Shown here piece after piece: positions 4,642 to 46,540 of a stretch of 64,000 bases of DNA. The DNA is from Oikopleura dioica (taxonomy: Eukaryota > Animalia > Chordata): contig OU015569.1 in the NCBI GenBank assembly GCA_907165135.1, positions 5,270,001-5,334,000 of the forward strand, given 5' to 3'. Below the pieces are notes generated by a model that saw nothing but the letters and a program-made list of their open reading frames with translations, was not told the origin of the DNA and did no database searches. How positions within the stretch are numbered: position 1 is the first letter of the stretch; the number at the start of each line of letters is the position of its first letter. The position numbers were made by a program, and so were the translations under genes.

Positions 4642-6122
4642 TTAGCAACTGGAGCATGGCTTCGCCACACATCCGCAACAACCGCAGAGAAAGCATATTA
4701 AGATCCAAATGACTGAGAGCACGAGCAGCGATAGTACCACAGCGATAGCTGCTATCGAGCCAGTCGCTACGGTAGAAAAATGCGTCAAATTTCATAAAGA
4801 ATTATTCTGTACTCACCCAGGTCGCAGTTTCCGGTGGATTCATTGAGAACCTGGCCAAATGGACACGAATCACTTGAAGAGCTGTTTGTCTGAATTCATA
4901 TTTTATTAGATACAGTAAATACCGCTGGTCTGGGACGGTCCTAATTCACGAAAGCGTCCCAAACCAGCAGGATTTTCGCTTTCGACTCTCGGGCGCCACT
5001 TTCGCTTTCCGGGTAAAGCGGTCAGTTTAAAAACACTCGCCGTGGGCGCTTGCCTTTGATCCTTATTTTGCCCGACCGTCCCAAACTAGCACGATTTTTG
5101 AGCGTCCCAAACCAGCGGTATTTACTGTAGTTGACGGAAAAATCACTTCAGGTGAGGCCTAGAGTTTATAAAAGTCTTTAACTTTAGGAATTTTGTGATT
5201 TGAGATTTTGTATAAGAAATTATGCATACGGTTGCTGCTGTTGTCGTCGATTTTGTTGTCGTTGTCGACGTGGTTGTTATTATTCTTGTTGTTGTGGTGG
5301 TGACTTTATTTGTTGTCGTTGTTGAGACTTGTCGTGGAGTTGTGTCTGCTGTGTCAAAGAACCCAGATTCAACATTATTATTGTCGGTATTAAAATTGAG
5401 GCTGATCGTTGAAAAATCAGTCTTTGTTGTTGGAGCTTGAGTGCTCGTTGTTGTCGGATTGCCGTCGTCGTTCTCGCACTGTGTTTGCCCTGTACATTGA
5501 CGGCATCGTTCTCGTTGATTTGCTTGGCAACTTGAATCGCTGCAGGTACTCCATTCCTGCCATTCTTGGCATGTTTCTACAGGAAATGAACAAGGTGGGT
5601 TGCATTGTTTTGATTCTTGAGCTTGGCCTGAGCATCCGTCTTCCCCAGGCACGCCATTTTGACAGACTCGTTGTCTTATCTGACTTCCCAGTCCACAGCT
5701 TACGGAGCAAGTGCTCCATGTGGACCAGGTCGCCCATGAACGATAAGGCACGCAGTCCCAATCATTACTTCCTCTTACGCGTTAGAACATCATTTTCAAA
5801 GTTTGGAAGGAAAATTTAGTCAAGGAAACGCTTTCCTGAAGCAAAAATCGATTCCTCGCAATAATTTGATAATGGGCAACCGGTCAATGTCTGCGAATTA
5901 ATCTCATGTCTACAGGATGTTTCGTCATCTACAAATGCACAGTTATCATCTCTTAAATTTTACGATTTATAAGAGGAATTCTTCATTCTTGCGGTTAACT
6001 CAACTTACTTTTTTCGCACTGCAGTTGGTACTTCAAAACATTATCCTCTCTTAAAGTATGGCATACTTCTCCCGCAACGCATGCCGAGCAACTATCAATA
6101 ATACTTTGTTGTGCATTTGTAG
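4642..6122 (-). CDS. Single-pass membrane protein: Cys-rich N-terminus, 2 thrombospondin type-1 repeats, Thr-rich mucin stalk, TM helix, Cys-rich tail (5' end not found)
   Basis: WATWSTWSTCSVSCGLGSQIRQRVC and WQEWSTCS (TSR motifs), then a TTTTT-rich stretch. GT-AG exons at 4889-4817 and 4769-4642 give SCPFGQVLNESTGNCDL-ATGSIAAIAVVLSLLVLSVIWILICFLCGCCGCVAKPCSSC-stop. Confidence 0.72.
4913..5127. mobile_element. Tc1/mariner-type MITE (215 bp) in an intron of the TSP1 gene
   Basis: TIR CAGTAAATACCGCTGGT(C/T)TGGGACG at 4913 and its reverse complement ending at 5127; TA on both flanks (4911-12, 5128-29). Confidence 0.85.
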
Positions 6123-13000: not shown

Positions 13001-16000
13001 AAAAAATAGCAACTAAACTGTTCTTTCGTAAATTGATCTTTGCGTTAAGCAGATTTAGGGAAACATCAATCAACAGTAGCAGTGCTGGACAGCATCTTTT
13101 TCTGCGGAATCTGCTCGAAGTTTATGAGCGATTCACTGGAGTCGCTCGAGGCACACGTGAACAGCTGGCGTCAGATCGAGGAAGAGGTAGCTCTGGCACA
13201 GCAAGACGACAACTTCGTGTGCACGCTGTGCTCCTACCAAACGCAGGTAAGCAATCAAAAAGCCATTTTTGGAGTTGCTTTCCGGTCGCAGTCCCACATC
13301 AGAAGGCTAATTAGGCGTTAGGGTGCTCTCCATGTTAATTAATTAAAAAATTGCTGGCGAGGATGAAAAGCTCCCACCGCGCTGTGCTTGGCGCCAGCAC
13401 CACCGCCATCTTCAAAGGCCAGCGCCGCGGGAAATCATCTCTAGCCACTTTGGAAACCAAAAGCTAACAATTACAACCAAAATTAATACATTTTAACGTT
13501 ATCCCAATTATCTTCATCGATTTTAGAGGAAAAGGTAGAATTCGATCTTACAATTAATAATTGTTTGATATATTAATAATAAGTTTGGACGTAAAATTGT
13601 GCGTAAAAATGATCGATTGGTTTTTACTGGTTGGGGCTCTGGGCTGGAGCGAATGCGACTTGCGCCGAAGCCGTTTCGGCACCAATTCGGCATCACATTA
13701 AATAATTGAGTGGCTAAGTGCAATTAGTCCCAGCACTAACTCCTTCAGTCGCCCGAGACACTGATTCGAGCAAGAGAACAATAGTACACGCTGGAAGGAA
13801 TGCGCGCACTGCCCTCCGCGTATTTGCACTTTGTTTATTGTATTTATTCGGCGTCCTCGCTGCCAGCGTCGAAGTGCATTTAATCAGCTATTCATTTTAA
13901 TCAAATATTTAATTTGCAATTTGCACGAAAGCTGATTATGCCCAATCAAATGGCCAAGACCATTCCAGGCCCGACACGAAATTACGCTTTTTACACTCAC
14001 TCTAGATTTCTCAAAAGTTAGACAAGAACACGAGAGAAAATAAGAAACACTACACCTTGGGATAAAATAAGACCGAGGCGACTGAATATGCTATGTCTAT
14101 AAAAAGATCTTTTCATAGAATATCTTTTCTAGCCAAAAACTTCTTGAAGCCAATTAATTCGATCAAAATGACCAATTCAGGCTGAGGTGTCTAATTCTCC
14201 TCCCCTGACTGTAGCGACCTGTCTTTCCTTGTACTGATTATAAATAGTTAAGGCCCCTGACGCCAGTTACTGTGGCACAGTAGTGATACAACAGTTACTG
14301 TTCAATTATCGCTGCCAGGATGTGTTTTTACGTCTGCGTGACAATAAGTGCATTGCAAATTTGATTGGGCATTTTATTTCTGATCGAATCGCGAATCCAC
14401 TTTTCAATCTTGTTTTTAAAGAGACCAAAAAAGCGAAAATTAAAATTAACTTTTTCATTTTTTCAGCTGAAGTCGAACTTTACGATTCACTGCAAAACCG
14501 ACAAGCACATCAGTAGACAGCAGCTAGCCGCGCACATTCGAGAAGGAGGTCCTCAGAACGAGTGGAGACTCAGGTTTGCTTTCCTTTCCATTTACCCGTA
14601 ATTACGTAATGTAGGTATCTTCCACAGGGCTTGCAACTGGTCTGCCAGCTCTGTCAGTTCACCGCCGCCAGTTGGGACGGGTTAAAGCTACATGCTGCCA
14701 GTGAGAAGCACATTCATCACGTTCAACTTTACCAGGTAAATCGAGCAGTTGAGATCCATTCAAGAGTTTTTTCATTGATTTTCGTTACTTTCAAAATGTA
14801 GGAAAATATTGACGTGTTCGTTTTTGTGATTGAGAATGGGGCGGTATTTGCTCAGTTTTCCCATAAAGGTGGAGGGACATTTGCAGAGGAAGAGCCGCTG
14901 CGGAACCAAATGTTTTAGTCCATAATTACTAGGTGTAATTGTAGAAAAATGGACCCCATGATCGCACTTGTAAAACTCCAATTATGATGCAGATTTAGAA
15001 TCCCCAGGTCGCGGCGAACATTTTGATACCAAGGTCACCGGAATCAGACTTGATTTTCGACCGATAATGAGCATCTGAAGTCCCCAAATGAGCGCTAGAA
15101 ATTTTCGAGCGGCCGGAAAGGCATGAATACTCCATCCAGTCATTTAACCAATAGTCCCAGTTTGTAGAGCAGGTTCTATTCTACTAGAATCAATTCACAG
15201 AAGTTGTGAACAGGGACTCTTGTAAGGACCAGCGCCGAAAGAGGCCCCCAAAAGGTGCAAAATCGAGGTGAAATCGTGAGTGCGAGTTCTCGGAAACCAA
15301 ATTTGGCATTGATTTCCCCATTTTTCGGCTTCTTCTGGCGCTCATTCTCACTAGAGTCCCTGTTCACAACTTCTGTGAATTGATTCTAGGAGAATTGAAC
15401 CTGCTCTACAAACTGAGACTATTGGTTGAATGACTAGATGGAGTATTCATCCCTTTCCTGGCGCTCGAAGATTTCTAGCGCTCATTTTGGGACTTCAGAT
15501 GCTCATTATCGGTCGAAAATCTAGTCTGATTCCGGTGATCTTGGTATCAAAATGATCGCCGCGACCTGGGGATTCTAAATCTGCATCATAATTGGAGTTT
15601 TACAAGGGCGATCATGGGGTCCATTTTTCTACCATTACACCTAATAATTACTCTCGACGGGCTGTTATCAGGAGATAGGCCGAGATCCTGGCCCGGCGCG
15701 GGCGAAACATTTTAATCGTCGGGTGGCCCCTTATCATCACATCGCACCCCGTCGGGTCGCACTGATTATAACCTGCCGAGCTCCAAATTATACAGAACGC
15801 GGCGAAAGCAAAAATGAACATCAGATTATATAGTTTCTCCCCTATCTCGATTTTATCCGCCATGGAGTTTTTCTCGAATTTCAGTCATTGATTAGAAAAT
15901 GCTAACTGTACTCAACCTCGTTTTGGCATTTAGCGACTTGGGTGAAAATAATCAAAACAAGGCACTCGAAACCATTTGATAAATTTGCTATGTTGGTTGT

Positions 16001-19000
16001 TAGAGGATTAAAATGAGTTGATTGGAAATGCAAAATTAGAAGTGATAGAAAGTAGCAAGCTATATTCGGTGGCGAGGAAGGGAGATCGATCTTCTCCTGA
16101 TGAGGTGCGGAGGAGATGATCCACTGTCGACGAGATGATCCTCAGCTGCCTTTCTACTTTTGTCAAACCAGATTCGCGGATAATTTCGCGCAATTGTTAT
16201 ATATTAATCACTCATTAATTCAAGTCATTAATCAGAGAATCAATACGCCTGCTATTCAACCAGAAAAGAGTAATTGCAGCGTTGCTCACTCATTTGAACT
16301 AACACTTTTCTTTTCAACAGAGAGGACCGAGCAGTGCGCAAATAAAAATGAATACTTTGAATTGAATGAATCTTGAGATATTCGTTTAGAAAGTAAAGGA
16401 GCATCAACTCTCGCCCGAGTGTTCCGCGTGCGGCCAAGTCTTCAAATCGAAGCTGGAACAAGTTCGACACGCTATGGACAGCAACCACCCACTGAAACTG
16501 CCCCAAACTAAAGGTATGAACTGCTTGAACCTGGCTATTTTAAATGGCTACTCGGAAACGAAAGATTCTAGTGGAGATTTCTCCGAGAAGCTCTGCTTTG
16601 TTTTCTCTATTTTCCTGTGGTTCTGTTATAAAACGCATGTATATAAGTGTAAATCCCGTAACTAACAGTAATTAGATGGAGACGCTCCGAACTTTCAAAA
16701 TGGAGCAAGCGACGAGCATCCCTGCCCACTTTGCCTGGTAAGTCGTTCTATCACTTCGCTCGGGTTTGTGTTTACTGTTGGCGCTTGAGCGGAAGAGGCT
16801 CACCCCGGATTTTCCCGCATTTTTGTGAGGAAGACAACAATTAGCCATGTTGGCGGTTGTTGTTATTGTGAATCAATTGAGGCAATTTGGATGTGCGCGG
16901 ATTGCGCTAATTTAGTCGGGCGCGGGCGATTGCGTGGCTTAGTACTTGATCCTGTAGAAAGTGGATCTGGTTAATTTTATTCGCATTTCGTGGGGCAGGT
17001 TTCGAGTATCCCGCCTGTCTGAATTAAAATTTGATCGCTTTGGATAATTTCATTATGTGTGAAATTCGATCGATTAATAATTAATGATGATTAAGTGATG
17101 TACCCAAAAAGTCAGCCGGGGCGGCATTTGTGGCTCCGTCCGACACCCGCAAGTTGATCCATTAAACTCATCCCGTTAATGGACGCCTAATTACAACTGA
17201 CTGACATCACCTCCGCCAAATAGCCAGCGAATTAATGCCTTCTTGTTCAGGAGGCGATCTCGGAGAAGAAACTCGAGCTCCACCTGCGCCACACTCACCA
17301 GGTCTGCCCAGAAGTCGCTCAGCGTCTCGTCTTCCAACAGTCCAATCAGTTCAACCCTTACTGCGCTCCCAAGATGGCGGCGCAACCCTTCAACGGCCTA
17401 CTCAACAAACTTGTGCAGCGAGCCTCAACAACAACTTTCGACAACGAGCTCCAACGCCAACTGCACCAAATGGCCCCAACTCCACCCGCACAGCCACCAT
17501 CGGTTCAACAACTCATCCAGCAGCTCAACGCCAAAGCCACTCCTCCGCCCGTTGCAAATCAACTACAAATGGACTGGGCACAGCGTTTATCGGCGAGCGC
17601 CGGAGCTGCGATGAATCCTATCCTTGCCCAGCTCATTCTAAACCAGTTTCAATCCGCCAGCGACACAAGTCAGAATGAGCAGAAAGTAAAGAAGGAAGAG
17701 GAAAATGAGGCGTCGCGCAAATCCTCTATCGACAACAACCAGGATACGGCGGAGTTTTCGGATGAAGAGAATCAAAATCCGCTTCAGATCGTCGAAATGG
17801 AAAATGAAGAGACAAAGAAGTCGGAGAACAACTCTGAGTCTAGGAGCAATAATTCCGCAGCAAACTCAGAGAACGGAAATTCCACAAAAGAGGAGGGGAA
17901 TCGACGAATGCGCACTTTGATCTCTCCCGAGCAAGCGGAGATCCTCTACCAGGAGTATTTGAAGGTAACTCTAGCGTCTTAAGCCGACAGTAATGAAGCA
18001 TCATCGAATAATTGCCCGGGCTATTAGTCAACGTAGCGTTTGCTATTTCTCTTCTCCCTTCGCGAAAATGACCTAATTGCAGCTTATTTGGTTCCAAAAG
18101 GTTCAGCCTGCAAGGTGCTACCGAAACAGTTCTAATTGCTGAGCCTTTGAAACAAGTGTATAATTTACCGCAAATTAACTCATGGCAGCATCGGTTTACG
18201 GCGTGCCGACCATAATTATCCATTTTCGCACCCGGCAAGGGCAAAAATCACCAATTAATCATCCTCAGCCGTGCCCTTCCGCGAACGCTTGTGATGGGCA
18301 ACCGCCTAAACGTTCCGAGCTAACTTTTCAATTTGTATTCTAGGACAATTGCCCTCCTCGCCATCGTTTGGAAGATATCGCGCAAAGCACCGGTCTTAAA
18401 CGACGAGTGGTTCAGGTCTGGTTCCAAAACACACGTGCTAGAGAACGAAAGGGACAGTATCGCTCAGTCTCACACTTCGCCAGCGCCAAGAAACAGGGCG
18501 TCAATCCCATAAGCAGTAACTCGCTACTCAGCTTGGCTGGAATGAGCGCTAGAAGTCAACAGAACGAAAAAGATCTTGATCGTAAGTGTCCGCTGATGGC
18601 GCTGTTTTATCCCAGCCAATCAGAAATTAGTACTTATCTAAAAATTTATTCAAGTATCTGAATCTGGCTCTAAGAGCTATCCTGCTTCACCTGAAGGATT
18701 TGGCCTTTCCTCGCTCGACGATGACTCTGCACTGCCTACAATGCTGAAGCTCTCGCAAAAGAAAACCTTCGCCAACAACAACTACGTGAAAACACCCAGT
18801 CCGGGCAGCCAAGCGACAGGAAGACTGAGTGCGGATGGATCAGAATCAGGCCAGAAACGTTCTCGAACTCAGCTTTCCCAAGGCCAGGTGATGGCAATGC
18901 AGAGCACCTTCGAAATGTACAGAAGCCCTAGTTTGGCCGAATGCGAAATTCTTGGCAATGGAATTGGCCTTGCTAGACGCGTTGTACAGGTATTTACAGT

Positions 19001-20747
19001 AAAATTTAGCTGAAGAAAAAATCAAAGCGGCTAATCGAATAAGTAACTGCGGGGGTGTTTTTAGTTGCGGATGAACGTAATCAAGTCTTGCTAATTAGTT
19101 TATATGAAATATCGTATTAGGCTTAGCTTGGGAACGGTGGGAGAGTTTTGTGTTGTGCGCTGAGCACTGAAACATTGATGTTTTGCAAGCTAATCTCGTT
19201 AGATGCCTCTACAGACTTAGATTTTGGCAGCGCTTGAATTTAATGAATACCTGTGAGTCGGGCATTGTCGGATCGGAACTTTGTATTTCCCCCGTCCGCT
19301 AGAACTCGCAGCTGCTCTGGCTGAGTGCATAAGTTACCCCTTGCGCACTGTTTAATTAATGCTGGGGCTTTGCCGTGAGTGCGCGCAAACCCTATCATTA
19401 ACTCATTTAAAGGTTTTTACGATTAAATACGCTGCTTCCAAATATTCGTAAAGAGAATTCGTCGCGGTAAAGGAATTGTGGTGATTTGTGCATTAGACTT
19501 AATCTCGCAAGATTACCGCCGCCGGTTAAACGGCGCCCGCTAGCAACTGATGCATCAAGGGTGCACGCTCTAGAATACCTTTTTTCTCGCATATGGTGAC
19601 ACTTTTGTTTTATGGCATGGCATAATTATAATTATAATAAAGCAAGAAATCTATGTTCAGAGATTGTTTCTTTATGCATTTTTGTTCTGAGCAAATAGCT
19701 TAGGAAAGATAATTGAGCTTGTCTAGAGATAGTATCTTGAATTACACGAATGAGTTACTGTAACTAACAGACCTTTCGTATGTGACGTTTAATGTTTCTA
19801 GCAAAGATTTGACATATGAAAATTTGCGCAATGAGAAGAAAATATTCTGGGCCACCCTAGGACCGCGCAACACTCTCCTCTCAATTCAGTGCGACCACAC
19901 GGTGATTAATGGACGCAGCGAGGGATTACCGGGACCAGTTAAACCCCAATCACCGACAAAAATTACTAGTAAAATACGTCTTCGGGAAAAGCTACCGCTA
20001 AACCCTTAATTTTGGCCGCAATGGTGCGTGCGCTAGGAGCTCGATATAAGTCGCCTAGTTAGCCTAATGAGTTGCATGCCCAGCGCCGGCCGGGCAGACT
20101 ATATCGGCAGTAAGACCCCATAATTCCGCCGTTAAATTATAGTCATTTCTGGAATTATAATTATATATTCGATATTCATCAAATGAGCCGCGCGTGGTTG
20201 ATTGAGCCTCCCATCGCAGTACTCACATTAGACTCTTACTCATCACCATGTTTCAGGTTTGGTTCCAGAATCACCGCGCAAAGGAGCGCCGAAACCGTGC
20301 CGCCAGAGGAGAAACTCCGGAACCACCTTCTCCGGAGCCGCCGAAGGTGTGCTCTATTTGCAACGTTCCAATTGAAGGCCATACGGTATGATACAATATA
20401 AAAAAAAAGTATATATACAATTTTTCAAGGAGCTCCGTGAACATCTTTTCTCCGCTGCTCACATCAACCAGCTAAAGATCACGCAGGGAATCACAAACAA
20501 CCCAAGTCCCCCTTCTTCCGTCACCGTGGATGGCGGACTGGAAAGTAATAATTTGTTGGGCAATATACTCGGAGGACAGAACAGCCAGGCAATGGCAAAC
20601 TTCACGATATTCGCCAATATCCAGCGCATCATGGCGTCGCATGGGCTCGCCGCAACTGGCGTTAACCCTGCCCCGCTCGTCAACCCACTAACAAGCGAGC
20701 TCCCCTCTTCTGCCACAGTTTGCGAAGTGAACGAATCGGAGAACTGA
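10078..20747 (+). CDS. ZFHX3/4: ZFHX3/4 (ATBF1/Zfh2) zinc-finger homeobox transcription factor, about 15 exons, reduced form
   Basis: [60 protein letters not shown] and HCKTDKH...HIREGG..NEWRL. Two homeodomains: [11 protein letters not shown]...[16 protein letters not shown] and KRSRTQLS...[14 protein letters not shown]. The first exon (10078) is inferred. Confidence 0.93.
14930..15643. mobile_element. hAT-type palindromic MITE (714 bp) in a ZFHX intron
   Basis: Ends TAGGTGTAA...TTACACCTA with long inverted arms; exact 8-bp TSD ATAATTAC at 14922-14929 and 15644-15651. Confidence 0.92.
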
Positions 20748-21528
20748 TAATAATACGACCCTCTCGCAATTCCCAAGTTCAAAAATCATTGTGACTTTGA
20801 CAGACAGACAATCAGCTATTTATTCATTCATTTTATTTTCAACTCACGAACATGCACTGTACTGTAAATACGCAAGAATTATAAAGTCCTCATTCACCTC
20901 TATTATCTTATTATACATAGGCTTACCGCGGCTAGAAGCTATTTTCCAGGTTCTTTTGAATAATCTCACCAAACTACGAATACATATACTTCAAGACACG
21001 CTTGGAAAAGTTGATCAATTAGATTTTTCAAAATGGATCTTCTTGTTGCTTTTTTTGACAGATTTTTGTGGAGAAAATTGGCACTCATATCAGTTGAAGC
21101 CAATTTTGAGCACCTGCTAGTTTGATTTTGATAATTTTGTGCATACCAAGTGAAAGTTGAGGTCAGCCTGAATCGATAGAGTCAAAAATTTTATGCCAAC
21201 TTAGTTTTTCACACTTTCCCAGGGCTCCAAAGTTGACCAAGACTGTCAGATCTGAAATTTCAGAAATATCAAATTCTGATATAGGGGTGCTATGATGACG
21301 TTCTATAGCTTAAATGAAAGCTTATGATTCACTTGATTCAGTGAGGCGGTATTTTTCAACCAGCCGGTCATTCTCGCGGTTCATCGCGGTTCACTTCGAT
21401 TTTTGCATTTTTTCACGTTGTAACCAAATTTTAACTAATAAAAACTCGGCCAGTTAATGGCCACTTATAGTCACCTTTGGTCTAGTTCGGCCGGAGGACC
21501 CCGGAGGACCTCCCTGCTGGAAGACCAT

Positions 21529-22113
21529 GACGATTTTCAATAAGGATTTCTGAGTGACTTCTGACCCTCCTTTTTATGAGCTAATTGAAAAGAGCGTAAA
21601 AGTTATCCCAGATTTCCCAGGAAAAGGATGAAATTCCGAAGAAATAGCTTCATGACACGTGACTGAAGTCCCAAAAGTACCAAAACTTTCCCGCCCGGGC
21701 ATTTTCGACTCGTCTGAGATACAAGAGCTTGTAATAGCTCAAAATGATCGTCTTGGCGAGCTCTTGGTGGGCATCATATTTTCATCCCTCTTCAACCCTT
21801 TTTCATCCCTTTATCTATTGCTCGAAAAAAGAAATTTAAAAAATGCGTTGAAAAGGGATGAAAACTTAATGCCCACCAAGAGCTCGCAGAGACGATTATT
21901 TTGAGCTATTACAAGCCTTATCAGCTCAGACGAGTCGAAAATGCTCGAGCGGGAAAGTTTGAGTTTTTGGGACTTCAGTCACGTGCCATCGCATCATTCT
22001 TTCGAAAATTTCATCCTTTTCCTGGGAAATCTGGGATAACTTTTACGCTCTTTTCAATGAGCTAATAAAAGGGAGGTCAGGATTTCACTCAGAAATCCTT
22101 ATTGAAAATCGTC
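21529..22113. mobile_element. Palindromic MITE with GACG...CGTC ends and 3-bp TSD (CAT), inserted in the left arm of the giant element
   Basis: Starts GACGATTTTCAATAAGGATTTCTGAGTGA and ends TCACTCAGAAATCCTTATTGAAAATCGTC. CAT flanks both sides, and the mirror arm (about 23710-23735) shows the empty site. Confidence 0.9.
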
Positions 22114-22389
22114 CATCCGCTGGAAGACCAATATTAAAATATTCAATATATGGCCGCGCTCGGCCAGTAAATGGCCACCTATGGCCAACAGTGGTCTAGT
22201 TCGGCCGGAGGAACCCCGGAGGACTTCCCAGGTGGAAGACTATCAGCTAAAAGACCAAAATTATATAATCCTATGGAATGCCTTGCTGGGCTAAGAATTG
22301 AAACTTTAGGCAAACTTTGGTCACTTTTTGCCGGAGGACCCCCGGAGGACCCCTTTTGCCGGATGACAATCTACTAAAAGAGGTCCGTT

Positions 22390-23455
22390 TATTCTTTTAA
22401 ATCAGAGTCAGGGCGAAGCCGACCCGAAGGGGAAGCAACGCCCGTTTATTATTTTAAATCAGAAGCAGGGCGAAGCCGACCCGAAGGTGAGGCCACGCCC
22501 GATTATTCTTTTCAATCAGAGTCAGGGCGAAGCCGACCCGAAGGGGAGGCCACGCCCGTTTATTCTTTTAAATCAGAGTCAGGGCGAAGCCGACCCGAAG
22601 GGGATGCCACGTCCGTTTATTCTTTTAAATCAGAGTCAGGGCGAAGCCGACCCGAAGGGGAAGCAACGCCCGTTTATTATTTAAAATCAGAAGCAGGGCG
22701 AAGCCGACCCGAAGGGGAGGCCACGCCCGTTTATACTTTTCAATCAGAGTCAGGGCGAAGCCGACCCGAAGGGAGGCCACGCCCGTTTATACTTTCAATC
22801 AGAGTCAGGGCGAAGCCGACCTGAAGGAGGCCACGCCCGATTATTCTTTTCAATCAGAGTCGGGGCGAAGCCGACCCGAAGGGAGGCCACGCCCGATTAT
22901 TCTTTCAATCAGAGTAAGGGCGAAGCCGACCCGAAAGGGAGGCAACGCCCATTAATTATTTTAAATCAGAAGCAGGTCGAAGCCGACCCGAAGGGGAGGC
23001 CACGCCCGATTATTCTTTTCAATCAGAGTCAGGACAAAGCCGACCCAAAGGGGAAGCCACGCCCGATTTTTTTTTTCAATCAGAGTCAGGGCGCCTCTGA
23101 TTTAAAAGAATAAACGGACGTGGCATCCCCTTCGGGTCGGCTTCGCCCTGACTCTGATTTAAAAGAATAAACGGGCGTGGCCTCCTTCGGGTCGGCTTCG
23201 CCCTGACTCTGATTGAAAAGAATAATCGGGCGTGGCCTCCCTTCGGGTCGGCTTCGCCCTGACTCTGATTGAAAGAATAATCGGGCGTGGCCTCCTTCGG
23301 GTCGGCTTCGCCCTGACTCTGATTGAAAAGAATAATCGGGCGTGGCCTCACCTTCGGGTCGGCTTCGCCCTGCTTCTGATTTAAAATAATAAACGGGCGT
23401 TGCTTCCCTTCGGGTCGGCTTCGCCCTGACTCTGATTTAAAAGAATAAACGGACC
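22390..23455. repeat. About 57-bp tandem array: about 12-13 forward units, then about 6-7 inverted units meeting near 23092
   Basis: Unit AATCAGAGTCAGGGCGAAGCCGACCCGAAGGGGAGGCCACGCCCGTTTATTCTTTTA; it shows 19-aa periodicity in spurious ORFs. Confidence 0.93.
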
Positions 23456-24491
23456 TCTTTTAGTAGATTGTCATCCGGCAAAAGGGGTCCTCCGGGGGTC
23501 CTCCGGCAAAAAGTGACCAAAGTTTGCCTAAAGTTTCAATTCTTAGCCCAGCAAGGCATTCCATAGGATTATATAATTTTGGTCTTTTAGCTGATAGTCT
23601 TCCACCTGGGAGGTCCTCCGGGGTTCCTCCGGCCGAACTAGACCACTGTTGGCCATAGGTGGCCATTTACTGGCCGAGCGCGGCCATATATTGAATATTT
23701 TAATATTGGTCTTCCAGCGGATGGTCTTCCAGCAGGGAGGTCCTCCGGGGTCCTCCGGGCGAACTAGACCAAAGGTGACTATAAGTGGCCATTAACTGGC
23801 CGAGTTTTTATTAGTTAAAATTTGGTTACAACGTGAAAAAATGCAAAAATCGAAGTGAACCACGATGAACCGCGAGAATGACCGGCTGGTTGAAAAAATA
23901 CCGCCTCACTGAATCAAGTGAATCATAAGCTTTCATTTAAGCTATAGAACGTCATCATAGCACCCCTATATCAGAAGTTGATATTTCTGAAATTTCAGAT
24001 CTGACAGTCTTGGTCAACTTTGGAGCCCTGGGAAAGTGTGAAAAACGAAGTTGGCATAAAATTTTTTTGGCTCTATCGATTCAGGCTGACCTCAACTTTC
24101 ACTTGGTATGCACAAAATTATCAAAATCAAACTAGCAGGTGCTCAAAATTGGCTTCAACTGATATGAGTGCCAATTTTCTCCACAAAAATCTGTCAAAAA
24201 AAGCAACAAGAAGATCCATTTTGAAAAATCTAATTGATCAACTTTTCCAAGCGTGTCTTGAAGTATATGTATTCGTAGTTTGGTGAGATTTTTCAAGAGA
24301 ACTTGGAAAATAGAAAATGCCGCGGTAAGCCTAATTATACAACATTGTGATCCCACTTCATCCATTTCACTCATTGTTATTATTAGTAAAATCGATCTCT
24401 GCCATTGTAACTTTCACAATTTTCAATTTTCCGAAGAAAACAATCAATGCACCAATTACGATAATACATATCACAAATCACTAAGATGTCT

Positions 24492-25708
24492 TTATTTCTC
24501 AGAATCTCCTATTAGCAAGACAATCTGGCCGCTTCGTTTCCGCGTTTCATCTTCTTTGTAGAGATGTGCGATTGAGGCATCTTTTATATTGAACTTAGTC
24601 TCGATCTTGGGGACTATCTTGTTTCTTGCTAGAAATCCAGCTGCCTTAAATTCATTAAATAGATATCTTATAAATCATAATCGCATTGCCTCGTATAAGT
24701 CGTTTACTTTTGCATTCGCTAGGTTGATTCCAGAAAGATACACTTCTTTGGCCAAAAATGGCCTAAGATAGAGCTGTACTTTTTGCTCGTGAGGGCCAAG
24801 GAGAATGACCCGTCCACCTGGATTCATCATAGCCAGGTCTGTTTGAAGATTTTCCGGTTTGGACTCGACTAAGAGGTCGATCCCTCCAATTCGCGATTTA
24901 ACCATTTTGACTAGCTCTTCATTCGTGTTATCGGCATGGTTAAACACTTGCAAGCAACCACATTCTTTAGCAGCTTTTTGACCATTGAATGAACCTGCAG
25001 TGCCATATACGCGCAGGTTGAGAGCCCTTCCGATTTGGGAGAGCGCATTTCCGACTGCCCCGCTTGCTCCCTTGACGAGAAGCGAACCACGAGGAGGAAG
25101 ACGCGAGATCTTTGCGAGAATTCGATGCGCTACAAAGTAAGGAAGGCCGTAGCAGGCTCCCTCGGCGAATGATACGCTATCTTACGCTGAAGTTAAATAA
25201 TTGCCGTCAAACTCTTTTACCTGGAAGGGCATGAACACTTCCATTCAAAACAGAAGCAACGCAGTACTTAGCGTAAGTCCCTGTTTTCGTCGAAATGACA
25301 GTATAAACTCGATCCCCCAAATCAAACTCCGTCACTGAATAATTGCCAATTACTGACTAAAATTAAACCTCACCTTGGCGTCCTTTTTGTACAATTATTC
25401 CCGCCGCATCACTTCCTGAAAATAATTATTTTCCAAAAATGATTTTAATTGTCCTTGCCTAAGATAAACGGCTTCTGGAGCTTACGCCCTTGCGAAAAAT
25501 AGCCCGAGCGTAGAAGCACATCAAAGTGATTGACAGAAGTAGCGCGTATTTTGATCAATACGTCAGTGGCCATCAAACGGAAGTCTAGCTCGTCCAAGCC
25601 GGACCACTGCATCGAGCTTGCTGGGCCGTAGTCTTTCAATAAAATGCCTTTAAACTTCTCTGACTTGAGACGCATGCCATCTCTTATCACGAATCCAGTT
25701 CTGTCCAT
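24492..25708 (-). CDS. CRYZ: Zeta-crystallin-like NADPH:quinone oxidoreductase (MDR family)
   Basis: VLIKIRATSVNHFDVLLRSG, GSDAAG, GDRVY, GACYGLPYFVAHR, LLVKGASGAVG, VYGTAGS, VFNH and GGRVILLG align with the CRYZ motif order. TAA at 24492. Confidence 0.8.
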
Positions 25709-42109: not shown

Positions 42110-45100
42110 TCAGTGACAATCGGGAGTAGTCTGGATCATGTTGCCAGAGAGGATGATCCGCTTCCAAGCGAACAAGTAAAAACCGAGGCCAGCCGAAAAC
42201 ACAACAGTAAGACACAAGTATAGATTGAACGTCATAAAAACAAGCATCAGACAAAGGCTGATAAACTGCTGCAGCACATAAGAAACGCTGAGAAGAATGT
42301 GGGTTGATGATTTAAGTCCGTGGCGGTAGCTTGGGGCCAGCTGTCTAGTGACGAGGGGTGTACGCGAGCCAGGTCGCTCTGGCTCGCCACTGTCAGATTG
42401 ACTCTCGTCTTGGACAGCTTCGTACTTGTTGTGGAAGGAACAGATGAGCTCTGAACAAAAATTTAACCAACAAAAACGAACCCTGTTCCAGTTTAACTCG
42501 TCAATAAATCAAAGGACATCTTTTATTGTCTTACATCGTTGAGGACTGAGCAGAGTTCGAAATTTTTGCGGCTCCCGGGCAAGGGGGCGGCGGGCGGGCG
42601 GGCACGGGCAGAATATTTAAGATTCCCGGGGGCAAAAACGGTCACGGGCACAAAAACGAATTTTCCCGCGAGCCAAGCGGGCACGGGCACTATAACAAAT
42701 TTTCCCGCGGGCAGATACGGGCACGGGCATGAATGAGAAGATTCCCGCGGGCATAAACGGGCACGGGCGATTTGCCCGCGTTCCCGCACGAAATATTCCC
42801 GAGGGCAGCCCGGGGGAACATTTTTTTCTACTGCTAAATCTCAAGCCTATTTTTCAAAATAAGAAAATAAAATAAAAACGACCCTGAATCAATTCGGATT
42901 TTTAAATCGCAAGTTTTAGGAGCTAGTTGAAACTACGACCGAATGGTCTCCGTTTGGGGAAACGGCGACTTGGGCAAACGGCGATGTGAATTAATTTAAA
43001 TTGATTAATCATATAACTTTTATTGTCTTCTTCACAGTCAATCCTGGCTTCACTTATTTCAATCCCGGCTTCAAAAACTTCGATCCTAGCTTTTCAGACG
43101 TCAATCTTGGTGGCTCAAACTTGAGTCCTGGCATCTCCAGCGTCAATCCCGGCTTCTTCAATGCTGATCCGTTATCAATGTTGATCACTTACTTCAATCC
43201 AAGCTTCTCAAACGTCACTCCCGGCTTCTCAATTGTCAATCATCGCTTCTTGAATGTCGATCATGGCTTCTTCAAGATAAAAATGGCGTTGAAAAAGCCG
43301 AGATGGAGATGGATGAAGCCGGAATCGACGTTGGAGAAGTCGGGATCGACGATGGAGAAATCGGGATTGACGTCGAAGAAAGAAAATGAGAGAGAGACAA
43401 TGGAGAAGCCATATTTGAACTCGGTGAAGCGAGAATTGGCGATGGAGAAGCCATAATTGATATGGAAGATGATATTGGAGAAAACATGATTGATGTTGGT
43501 GAAGCCAGGATTGGCGTTGAAGAAGCCAGGATTGACATTAAAAAAGCCAAATAATGTCTAATGATTTGATAATGTCTAATGAACTTTTTTCAGATCGCCG
43601 TTTCTCCAAGTTGGGCAAACGGCGATTTGGGCCAACGGAGAGGGGATATTAAATGAAGATTTGTAAAATGCACTAAAATCCATGAAAATTTGTCAAGCTT
43701 CTCACGTCTATTTGTGATGTCGTAGAGATATCATGATGGTATGTACTGATAGAGTAGAGTCTCTTCTATCTAAAAAATCAAAAATTTTCAAAAATTTATC
43801 AACCTGCGGTTCTAGAGAGCTTCAAAACATCATTTTCGCAGAAGAGGAGCCTCTTTTTGCTGGAAGACCAGATTTAGGTCCTCCGCTCCTTTTTCACATT
43901 TCTAGCTCATAGAACGCTTAGGTTCATACTTTTAAATGATGTTTTTAGTTTTTACGATAGTTTCAGATATACTCTATCAGAAAATTACATCATTACAGTC
44001 GTATGACGTCACACTTAGCCGCAAACGGCTTGACAAAATTTCCCAAATTTAAACTTTAACTCTCATTTTCTCAGCTTCTAGCGCCTTATTTTGAAATCGG
44101 GCTGGTTAGAAAAGTTCGATGTTGTCTTAAGAATTAATTGAAATATAAAATAATTTAAATTCACTAAAAATGTGATTTTTGAAAATTTTCATTTGAGATC
44201 CCCAGACCAGTCCGATTTCTGATCGAAACAATTCTGCATTTTGCAGAACTATTCTGCATGCACAATGTGCATTGTACATCGTCCATGAGTTTATTTTTGC
44301 ATATAGACGTGCTTTTTTAAGGTTAACGAAGTTTTCCAGCCCACTTCCGCCTTATAGACCCCCGAACACCATACTTTTTTAGAATCAGCAGAAAATTTCA
44401 AAAACTTTGGCGGTTTAAAATTCTAGAGAATTCTAGTCTCTGTCGATTCTAGAGCCGGAAGTTGACGAAATTTAGTTAAAATGGTAGAGTGTGACCTATC
44501 AAATTGATGCTAAGAAGATTTCGAGTCATCCTTAAATCAATATTTCAGAAGAAACAGTCCCAAACCTGGTCAAACCGACCGTTAAAATTATGTAAAAAAG
44601 GCATAAAGTGATGAATTTTTTTTCACTTTTTTCCGGTTTATATTACCGCGGTTGGTCTTGATTCTTGGTCTAAAATGATATGAAATCGTCTAAGCATCAA
44701 TTTGATAGGTCACACTTCACCATAACACCTAAATTACGTCAACTTCCGGCTCTAGAACCGACCGGAAGTGGAGTTTTCTAGAATTTTGAACCGTTAAAGT
44801 TCTTAAAATTTTCTGTTGATTTGTAAAGGTATAATTAGGTGTAATGGTAGAAAAATCAACCCCACGATCACCTCTTCTAAACTTCTTTTTTGATGCAGAA
44901 TAAGAATCTTTAGGTCGCGGCGATCATTTTGATACCAAATTCATCGAAATCCGACTTGGTTTTCGACATAAAAGTACCATTTGAAGTTCGAAAATGAGCA
45001 CTAGAAATTTTCTAGCGCCCGGAAAAGGATGATTACTCCAGCCTATCAGCACGTGCCTCATTCCAGATTGTAAAGCAGGTTATATTCTATCAGAATCTAT

Positions 45101-46540
45101 TCTCAGAAGTTGTGAACAGGGACTCTAGCGAGAACCAGCGCCCGAAGAAGCTCGAAAAATGAAGCAAAATTGAAGTGAAAATTTCACTGAAATCGTTTGT
45201 CTGAGTTCACGGCAGCCATTTTTGGCCTTGATTTTACCCGATTTTTTGAGCTTCTTCGGGCGCTGGTTCTCACTAGAGTCCCTGTTCACAACTTCTGAGA
45301 ATAGATTCTGATAGAATAGAACCTGCTCTACAATCTGGAATTAGGCACGTGCTGATAGGCTGGAGTAATCATCCTTTTCCGGGCGCTAGAAAATTTCTAG
45401 TGCTCATTTTTGAACTTCTAATGGTATCTTTATGCCGAAAACCAAGTTGGATTTCGGTGAATTTGGTATCATAATGATCGCCTCGACCTCAAGATTCTGC
45501 ATCAAAAAATAAGTTTAGAAAAGGCGATCATGGGGTCGATTTTTCTACCATTACACCTAGGTATAATGTTAGGGGGTCTATAAGGCGGAAATGGGCTGGA
45601 AAACTTCGTTAACCTTAAAAAAGCACGTCATAACAGTTCTGTATGCAGATTAGTTTTCAATATACTCCCTCAAGTATTTGGTGTCTATTTCCACGCTATT
45701 TAAATAGTTTAAACACTTTTTCATAAGGTGCATTGAATCTGCCCGTGCCCGTTTAAGCTCGCGGGAATCTTGCCCGTGCCCGAATTTGCCCGCGGGAATA
45801 TTTTTTATTGTGCCCGTGCCCGCTTGTCCCGCGGGAAAATTCGTTTTTTTGCCCGTGACCCCTTTTGCCCTCGGGAATCTTCACTTTCTTGCCCGTGCCC
45901 GTATCTTCCCCCGGGCAAACGCGGGATTTCGAACTCTGGGACTGAGTTGCGCCAGCGACATTCTAGGCGTGAAACTTACTTGTTACGAGATTGTCCCTCC
46001 AAACACGAAGCCACTCGTGGAACAACGTAACGAGGAAGAGCACCAAGCAACTGAGGATCATCTCTTTAGGGGAATTGACAACCCAGGCTTTGAAGATCAT
46101 CTGAACGTCTTCTACTCCAAAGTAAAAATACATCTTCATCATTTCGTCGTGGCTCATCATCATCATATTACTAAAAAATCAATAAAAACTTCAATAGCTG
46201 CATTTCCCATAGGAACTAAGTAGGAGTGAAGAAAATTGACACATTATGGTTGATATATCGACTCTCTATCTATCTCTATGTCTAATTTTGATTTGAAAAA
46301 GTGCCATTGTCAGACAAAATGCAGAAAAACAGCGAAGTAAATATAAACAGAAAGTAGTCCAACTTATAGTGAGAATATTTTCTGTCTCTAAAACTCAAGT
46401 GTTATTCTATTGAGATGTAGATAGATAGACTCTAGCGGCGTTTACTTGTGTTGTGAGTGGTCCATATTCCCGTGGTTCATGTTCGAGTGGTCCATGTTTG
46501 AATGATCCATGTTTGAATGATCCATATTGGAGTGGTCCAT
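42110..46540 (-). CDS. SLC31A1: Copper transporter CTR (SLC31), 3 exons: 46540-46446, 46170-45980, 42450-42110
   Basis: (MDHSN)n N-terminus, MMMM..MKMYFYFG, TM2 LMLVFMTFN (MxxxM), TM3 AGLGFYLF, C-terminal CH-stop. Splice phases match across both introns. Confidence 0.92.
42947..43641. mobile_element. Foldback-like element with opposed 21-bp tandem arrays
   Basis: Ends TCTCCGTT...AACGGAGA with AAACGGCGA subrepeats. Units like GTCAATCCCGGCTTCTTCAAT (about 43030-43270) are followed by their reverse complement (about 43290-43550). No TSD found. Confidence 0.7.
43688..44040. mobile_element. Degenerate palindromic element (old MITE)
   Basis: Nested inverted pairs: TTTGTCAAGC/GCTTGACAAA, CTGATAGAGTA/TACTCTATCAG, AAACATCATT/AATGATGTTT. 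True ends unclear. Confidence 0.4.
44306..45629. mobile_element. Palindromic MITE with GACG...CGTC ends and probable 3-bp TSD (ATA), interrupted by a hAT MITE
   Basis: GACGTGCTTTTTTAAGGTTAACGAAGTTTTCCAGCCC at 44306 and its reverse complement ending at 45629; ATA on both flanks. Confidence 0.82.
44836..45559. mobile_element. hAT-type palindromic MITE (724 bp), same family as 14930-15643
   Basis: Ends TAGGTGTAATGGTAGAAAAAT...ATTTTTCTACCATTACACCTA; 8-bp TSD GGTATAAT at 44828-44835 and 45560-45567; shares internal GAAGTTGTGAACAGGGACTCT with the ZFHX-intron copy. Confidence 0.92.

Follow-up and report, generated by a model that had tools for sequence, protein, structure and literature searches.

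The stretch of Oikopleura dioica DNA analyzed here comprises 64,000 nucleotides of contig OU015569.1 (positions 5,270,001–5,334,000 of assembly GCA_907165135.1; hereafter the window, to which plain coordinates refer) and contains, in the gap between two convergent genes, a palindromic foldback element of 3416 bp. The flanking genes were searched exon by exon. The upstream gene is a multi-homeodomain (ZFHX-like) gene, with homeodomain matches in the exons 18368–18658 and 18741–19010, while the convergent gene is zeta-crystallin/quinone-oxidoreductase-like and matches the domains ADH_zinc_N (E = 9.5e-8) and ADH_N. The element begins 170 nt after the stop codon of the former and ends ~158 nt from that of the latter, in line with the original prediction, made from the letters of the window, which had put these distances at about 170 and 160 nt; the gap between the two stops without the element is ~320 bp. 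At the level of the locus, the finding is ordinary: selfish DNA inserted where two convergent genes lie 320 bp apart. The features of the locus are as follows, with MITE denoting a miniature inverted-repeat transposable element and TRF denoting Tandem Repeats Finder.

20388–20747, forward strand: final open frame of the upstream multi-homeodomain (ZFHX-like) gene, ending with the stop codon at 20745–20747
20910–20917: left 8-bp target-site duplication ATTATACA, identical to 24334–24341, with AT at positions 4–5
20918–24333: whole foldback element, 3416 bp
20918–20932, forward strand: left terminal inverted repeat TAGGCTTACCGCGGC, 15 bp, perfect
20918–21528, forward strand: left outer (flanking) arm domain, of which ~485 bp is homologous across subfamilies; its inner end holds, on the forward strand, the first 126-bp sub-repeat with a CCGGAGGAC double motif
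~20933–20961: end-specific segment of the left outer domain
21529–22113: nested 585-bp palindromic MITE of another family, with CAT at 21526–21528 and 22114–22116
22114–22384, forward strand: left inner arm; holds the second and the third of the 126-bp sub-repeats and their CCGGAGGAC double motifs
22385–23093, forward strand: forward array, 12.5 units of 57 bp (TRF score 1068, 88%)
23094: palindrome centre, where the arrays abut with essentially no spacer; hairpin loop ~9 nt
23095–23452, reverse strand: reverse array, 6.4 units of 55–57 bp (TRF score 586, 91%)
23453–23804, reverse strand: right inner arm, three 126-bp sub-repeats, uninterrupted
23805–24333, reverse strand: right outer domain, including the right terminal inverted repeat
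24319–24333: right terminal inverted repeat, complement of TAGGCTTACCGCGGC, part of the right outer domain
24334–24341: right 8-bp target-site duplication ATTATACA, read directly
24492–24953, reverse strand: 3' end of the convergent zeta-crystallin/quinone-oxidoreductase-like gene, with the stop codon at 24492–24494

The foldback is confirmed as a structure in the sequence. The original prediction had described a 3.4-kb foldback at 20918–24333 with near-identical inverted arms of about 0.87 kb and internal repeats, about 13 forward and 7 reverse 57-bp units meeting near 23092, a perfect 8-bp target-site duplication, and TAGG...CCTA ends. Its position is exact at the final length of 3416 bp, the non-array arm measures ~0.88 kb, the arrays hold 12.5 and 6.4 units that join at 23094, and both the ATTATACA duplication and the 15-bp terminal repeats are perfect. 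The outer arms (20918–21528 versus 23721–24333) are 97.4% identical by BLAST and 98.0% by MAFFT, and the inner arms (22113–22544 versus 23294–23724) contain no substitutions and one single-base offset. Of each arm, which holds the 57-bp arrays and the 126-bp sub-repeats, ~1.24 kb is pairable, and three CCGGAGGAC-type double motifs are present per arm, each within the ~126-bp sub-repeat. A chance origin of the pairing is ruled out because 319 nt of the element are perfectly complementary. Folded as single-stranded DNA, the central 1.4 kb (22385–23800) is predicted to form one long hairpin of −566 kcal/mol. Both traits of the foldback class, i.e., long terminal inverted arms able to pair and tandem repeats inside them, are thus present in the element.

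The left arm alone carries the 585-bp insertion at 21529–22113, which is itself palindromic and flanked by CAT on both sides; at the matching point of the right arm, CAT occurs once. The target duplication of this MITE is 3-bp CAT, or possibly 4-bp CCAT. About two dozen other full-length copies of the MITE, with 69–94% identity, are present elsewhere in the genome in addition to fragments. The Rfam matches inside it (microRNA-precursor models and AbsR25) lie far under their gathering scores and were rejected as a real RNA identity for what are generic hairpins.

Genome-wide searches, conducted over the assembly of 64,281,565 bases in 19 contigs, place the foldback element in a family. The first 14 bases of TAGGCTTACCGCGGC, i.e., the terminus TAGGCTTACCGCGG, occur at 33 exact sites, compared with ~0.5 expected by arithmetic in 64 Mb, and at seven more with one mismatch, mostly as plus/minus pairs. 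Twenty loci with the terminus were read, the termini at C4:197408, C3:439897, C5:121900 and C5:13138271 (contig:position) being left out. They include 14 complete end pairs 0.58–7.8 kb apart, with copy lengths of 581, 964, 3383, 3416, 3630, 4201, 4571, 4784, 4924, 5211, 5258, 5889, 6192, and 7829 bp. Perfect 8-bp duplications enclose 13 of the 14 paired copies and are different in each. All 22 of the 8-mer flanks, which include those of seven solo ends, carry AT at positions 4–5; 16 of them have a pyrimidine (Y) at position 3 and 17 a purine (R) at position 6, which gives the consensus nnYATRnn; over ±12 bp, no target conservation beyond this consensus was seen in the 22 flanks. Because 13 of the 14 pairs bear 8-mers of their own and the AT is invariant, the element moved as a unit, as had been claimed for the copy in the window, by a cut-and-paste type of insertion with an 8-bp stagger centred between A and T.

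A genome-wide BLAST of the arms and the 57-mer, which had been suggested as a check, recovered both related plus/minus pairs and further 57-mer loci. The 611-bp outer arm finds close copies (93–96%) as plus/minus pairs at C5:1794804 and C1:1815643, on two other contigs, and relatives of ~71%, again as plus/minus pairs, at many sites, which constitute a second subfamily. Every copy starts with the 14–15-bp terminus, followed by a unique outer domain of ~485 bp that is homologous across three subfamilies; within this domain, no dense short subterminal repeats were found, the only conserved block being TCGCGGTTCA at approximately position 465. Further inward, sub-repeats (126 bp here and ~275 bp in the larger subfamily) are followed by the 57-mer arrays, the length of which accounts for most of the variation in copy size, the copies of 581 and 964 bp being MITE-sized with few or no arrays. 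The arrays are usually opposed in orientation and often lopsided, with 12.5 versus 6.4 units here, 32 versus 4 at locus L031, and 38 versus 0 at L043. The 57-mer is also present at no fewer than 25 further loci, nearly always as a plus block and then a minus block. Since in some of these 57-mer elements the shared part of the arm is limited to the sub-repeats, the array module is common to foldback families with other ends.

Two of the loci read are irregular. At L030 (C1:1815343–1821905), a single left end is matched by two right ends spaced 1039 bp from each other, the terminal 703 bp of the element having been tandemly duplicated along with 336 bp of its flank; the flank part is 100% identical, and the duplication may be real or an assembly effect. 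At L048 (C4:14501934–14510234), a truncated 831-bp family copy lies, close to where contig C4 ends, directly against a long satellite built of a different unit, which reads as a 2400-codon open frame, its period being a multiple of three that mimics a giant open reading frame (ORF). In metagenome scans, the predicted empty site had 0 matches and the 57-mer core only eight single chance matches and no arrays; two viral-contig scans gave 0 matches. In the literature, no paper combining Oikopleura and foldback was found, and no description of the family in Oikopleura.

None of the 14 complete copies or seven solo ends contains a credible coding ORF, and the middle domain is variable or absent, which is a further trait of the foldback class; the FB/Galileo-like modular build free of ORFs that had been predicted for the single element therefore extends across the copies. 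Long ORFs (e.g., 423 codons at L043:2375–3646) were rejected as transposases, for they are the 57-mer, equal to 19 codons, read in frame; none of the long ORFs of the copies gave a Pfam match, and they match only other arrays. As all paired termini with at most one mismatch are gene-less, the assembly holds no autonomous member with the same ends.

The domain of the hAT transposases, Dimer_Tnp_hAT (PF05699), has nine matches in the genome, of which the seven strongest were walked to their ends; the two others, on C3, are weaker. The seven loci belong to one autonomous hAT family of ~6 kb with the termini CAGGGTGTCAAATCGCGG, represented by five full-length pairs (C5:13843992–13850064, C4:376493–382430, C4:391232–397170, C1:634560–640569, and C1:730273–736288) and several derivatives of ~0.9–1.8 kb (MITEs). 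In this family, the frame of the dimerisation domain is open, long subterminal tandem repeats of ~30 and 60 bp lie 3' of the gene for the transposase, and the sites C1:634560, 640569 and 645435 repeat the pattern of one left and two right ends described for L030. Among the traced PF05699 loci, no autonomous relative combining the ends of the foldback family with a hAT dimerisation domain was found. Genome searches with PF14372, PF14291, and PF04937 gave 0 matches, as did one with Tnp_P_element (PF12017); these are weak negatives since none of the models matched in control genomes either. The zf-BED search returned one weak match only (C5:314465), and a single-protein search with the hAT ORF retrieved its own family plus one distant match at C4:9246011 only. 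Domains of Mutator-like elements (MULEs) gave at least 13 matches in the genome, one of them above the Pfam cut-off, and none lies within 10 kb of any family terminus.

Termini of hAT elements begin with YARNG. Related termini of the type TAGGGTTACC, in which this start is complete, were found at 10 sites compared with 1 in the control. They comprise TAGGGTTACCTCGG at three sites, all on the plus strand, TAGGGTTACCGCAG at six, all on the minus strand, and TAGGGTTACCGCGG at one, on the minus strand (e.g., C1:12308280 and C4:13122801); the ten are not paired within reach and may be ends of a sister family or of large elements.

The identity of the outer arms is 98.0, 97.4, and 99.2% within an element and 92.3–95.6% between the three closest elements; since identity within elements exceeds that between them, the arms have been homogenised within each element after the copies separated. 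The outermost part behaves differently: 8 of the 16 left/right differences of the window copy fall at positions 16–44, and the 6–8 bp adjoining the terminal repeat show a left/right difference that is alike in every copy. Other copies have this end-specific segment too, and the second subfamily has a pair of end types of its own, a recurrence from which it follows that the two ends are kept different, as in the hAT element Hermes (PMC10368747). In the window copy, the inner 432 nt are essentially identical and the outer part holds the 16 differences, the boundary being the nested MITE. This contrast is compatible with exchange that spreads from the palindrome centre and stops at heterology; no weight is placed on it, however, because the arm differences are close to the 1.3% error rate stated for the assembly (PMC8008620).

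A profile of the 57-mer, built from 707 units (467 distinct), reveals a variable AT-rich spacer and a 33-nt core with conservation above 90%. This core forms an imperfect palindrome, GGGCG-AA-GCC-GA-CCC-GAA-GGG-GA-GGC-CA-CGCCC, and the 57-bp unit is predicted to form a hairpin as DNA (z = −2.8). Two unit types, which belong to the subfamilies with ~71% outer domains, differ at 7 of 23 spacer positions versus 2 of 34 core positions, and the two core differences form one compensatory pair (GGGCG/CGCCC versus GGGCC/GGCCC). The proposed core pairs are kept in 82% of cells, compared with 25–51% when the partner is slid by 1–3 positions. As one swap is a single event, the compensatory change is suggestive only. 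The core would fit a symmetric protein-binding site or a hairpin. Reiterated transposase-binding sites are favoured as a suggestive reading, given the parallels of Galileo (PMC3688188), of Tetris (PMC4079207), and of Hermes, whose subterminal repeats are quasi-palindromic (PMC10368747).

We propose, with a probability of roughly 0.7, that the element is one copy of a non-autonomous foldback-type cut-and-paste DNA transposon family of Oikopleura dioica. It would have inserted as a unit between the two convergent genes at an 8-bp AT-centred target, by means of an enzyme supplied in trans that makes an 8-bp staggered cut; no partner gene was found, and the family may by now be an orphan. Once inserted, the element would have kept its two arms similar through internal exchange, apart from the initial ~45 bp, which stay different at the two ends, and the arrays would grow and shrink, thus producing copies of 0.58–7.8 kb. 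The 33-nt core of the 57-mer would probably act as the reiterated binding site of the transposase, a role that has been proposed for the repeats of Galileo and Tetris and shown for the subterminal ones of Hermes, or, failing that, as a hairpin-forming module. The idea that the palindrome is an assembly artefact, i.e., a fold-back chimera of Nanopore reads, takes its force from the Nanopore-based assembly with its stated error rate of 1.3% (PMC8008620) and from the difficulty of assembling perfect palindromes and tandem arrays, by which the unit numbers 12.5 and 6.4 may be wrong. Nevertheless, it is hardly credible: the 8-bp duplication is perfect and stands on unique flanks, the MITE occupies one arm only, the two arrays differ in length, other copies conserve the end-specific segments, and thirteen other loci show the same architecture with duplications of their own. 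The duplication and the arm-specific insertion had already been held against an artefact in the original prediction, and we agree, the unequal arrays and the conserved end-specific segments being added here. It is also improbable that the host has selected the palindrome, whether as a terminator or insulator between the convergent genes or as a hairpin source of small RNAs, rather than merely harboring selfish DNA. The distance of ~160–170 nt from both stop codons and the greater conservation of the 57-mer core relative to its spacer would agree with such a function, but this conservation holds throughout the family, at no fewer than 14 unrelated insertion sites, and hence points to a role for the element, not for the locus, and the Rfam matches, far under gathering scores, fall in the nested MITE.

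As for the enzyme that would move the non-autonomous family, a hAT-superfamily transposase is the most likely candidate, held with confidence somewhat above even. The superfamily is defined by 8-bp duplications and short terminal repeats (PMC3517528, PMC3942097), and the duplication of the family has exactly this length; the AT-centred palindromic target further resembles the weak consensus of Tol2, TNA(C/G)TTATAA(G/C)TNA, centred on the insertion (PMC2753552), which is counted for hAT. Of the hAT-type transposase originally predicted, the 8-bp duplication, the TAG start, the Tol2-like target, the 7-nt palindromic junction of one copy and the related TAGGGTTACC termini with their complete YARNG start speak in favor, while no transposase sharing these ends was found. 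The copy at L031 (C1:5867334–5872117; locus C1:5867034–5872417) is the only pair that lacks a matching duplication. At its right junction, at locus position 5084, 7 nt equal to the inverted complement of the next flank bases are followed by an 8-mer that matches the left one at 7 of 8 positions, and the base adjoining the left end is changed to its complement. This looks like what the off-centre opening of a flank hairpin would leave, i.e., a P-nucleotide-like scar of an aborted excision. Flank-hairpin chemistry is common to hAT, Mutator, and Transib (PMC5499845), and the junction therefore argues against P or Tc1-type enzymes and not against Mutator. The main rival is accordingly the same non-autonomous foldback transposon moved by a Mutator-superfamily (MULE/Foldback) transposase, since most described foldback elements, together with Tetris and its 8–10-bp duplications, are assigned to that superfamily (PMC4079207); MULE transposition makes flank hairpins as well (PMC5499845), so the L031 junction does not discriminate, and the genome holds the 13 or more MULE-domain matches, only one over the Pfam cut-off. 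We consider this rival unlikely, as each of the 13 duplications, from 13 copies, measures exactly 8 bp, the short terminal repeat starting with TAG is hAT-like, and no MULE match accompanies the termini within 10 kb, a finding with which a trans-acting partner is still compatible. Mutator families typically have 9–10-bp duplications that vary within the family. A P-superfamily (Galileo-like) foldback element is very improbable, although Galileo has long inverted repeats whose internal tandem repeats bind its THAP domain (PMC3688188). The terminus of the Oikopleura family is unlike P or Galileo ends, the palindromic flank junction of L031 is not a P-type footprint, and the genome gave no Tnp_P_element match, a weak negative with controls equally empty. 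The P element itself makes 8-bp duplications and Galileo makes 7-bp ones; the duplication here is 8 bp, not the 7 bp of Galileo.

Several points weigh against the proposed explanation or its hAT assignment. No transposase gene was found between or near the family termini, and the CAGGGTGTCAAATCGCGG hAT family was rejected as a shown partner because its ends differ from the foldback termini. The start TAGGC agrees with YARNG at 4 of 5 positions, the terminal repeat being a 15-bp perfect one, and the target consensus nnYATRnn is neither that of Ac (nTnnnnAn) nor that of Buster (nnnTAnnn). The flank hairpins shared with Mutator-like elements and the assignment of most described foldback elements to Mutator, both cited above, belong here as well. 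The arm differences of 1–2.6% are of the same order as the stated error rate of 1.3% (PMC8008620). The binding-site role of the 57-mer is suggested by conservation and one compensatory change only, and no copies are closer than ~94–96%, which gives no sign of recent activity.

According to the original prediction, read-through from either gene could make long dsRNA, the DNA could form cruciforms, and such elements are candidate drivers of inversions and genome scrambling; the sole indirect hints are solo or half elements cut off within arms or arrays. At least six solo or half elements, e.g., L047, L044, L045, L046, and L049, consist of one terminus and 150–2260 bp of arm or array, followed by unrelated DNA; at L047 (C4:6554650–6562950), the left arm is followed by 15 forward units, and the array breaks off within a unit where it meets unrelated DNA. 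These elements show breakage or deletion inside elements, and no link to synteny breakpoints is drawn. At L044, ORFs that are retroelement-like and have a DSG protease motif lie beyond the element. Gene order is scrambled between the cryptic species of O. dioica, the cause of the breaks and the role of repeats having been left open, and few interspersed repeats could suffice for scrambling (PMC11067885). It is conceivable, albeit doubtful, that spacer-less palindromic transposons, dozens of which are present along with sister 57-mer foldback families, are fragile, recombinogenic sites that help drive this scrambling; if so, half elements would be expected at rearrangement breakpoints, left there by breaks at the centre or by exchange between one copy and another. 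The O. dioica genome is very compact and repeat-poor, and in the Nanopore-based OKI2018_I69 assembly, 44% of the predicted repeats are unclassified (PMC8008620), a fraction part of which the family now names. The 14-bp terminus, the strict AT-centred 8-bp duplication, and the shared 57-mer are diagnostic features by which copies could be scored as present or absent in published assemblies and checked for enrichment at breakpoints.

Other hairpin-shaped elements are present in the 64-kb window at 14923–15650, 44383–44821, and 44903–45498, with arms of 338, 147, and 279 nt, respectively, and arm identities of 82–91%. Moreover, a 134-nt inverted pair 3 kb apart, at 42599–45901, encloses two of these. 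Foldback-like MITEs seem to be common in the O. dioica genome.

Among known systems, the Oikopleura family is a clear example of foldback architecture on apparently hAT-type ends, and its notable features are arms homogenised within the element, ends kept distinct, and a conserved core of the repeat unit. Tetris of Drosophila virilis and DAIBAM are likewise non-autonomous, with long arms composed of a flanking domain, an outer tandem-repeat domain, and an inner domain, and they have few complete copies, no autonomous partner found, and MITE-sized relatives that share their ends (PMC4079207). However, Tetris has 220-bp repeats, 8–10-bp duplications, and a Mutator assignment, whereas the Oikopleura family has a 57-bp unit, a strictly 8-bp duplication, an invariant central AT, and TAG-type ends. 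Galileo, of the P superfamily in Drosophila, resembles it in its long inverted repeats with internal tandem repeats, which have been shown to hold extra transposase-binding sites (PMC3688188), and has been implicated in inversions; unlike the Oikopleura family, Galileo encodes a P-type transposase, none of which was detected in the Oikopleura genome (a weak negative). The hAT non-autonomous elements and MITEs, such as Mar, share the 8-bp duplication and a short terminal repeat (PMC3517528), and Hermes shares two non-equivalent ends (PMC10368747). In contrast, hAT elements are described as shorter than ~4–5 kb, with 5–27-bp repeats and no long arms, whereas the arms of the Oikopleura family exceed 1 kb and its central AT, weak in the Tol2 consensus, is invariant. 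The Drosophila FB elements, which are Mutator/MuDR-related, show the same hairpin-forming modular build with a variable number of arm repeats and often no middle gene. The repeats of FB extend to its termini and its duplication is 9 bp, whereas in the Oikopleura family the repeats are preceded by a conserved terminus of 15 bp and a unique outer domain of 485 bp, and the duplication is 8 bp. The sea-urchin TU elements, reportedly described by Liebermann and Hoffman-Liebermann in the 1980s, are modular deuterostome foldback transposons with tandem-repeat domains and 8-bp duplications, and their repeat unit and termini are not known to be related to those of the Oikopleura family. The family is one more case of a foldback structural kind that has been known since the 1980s.

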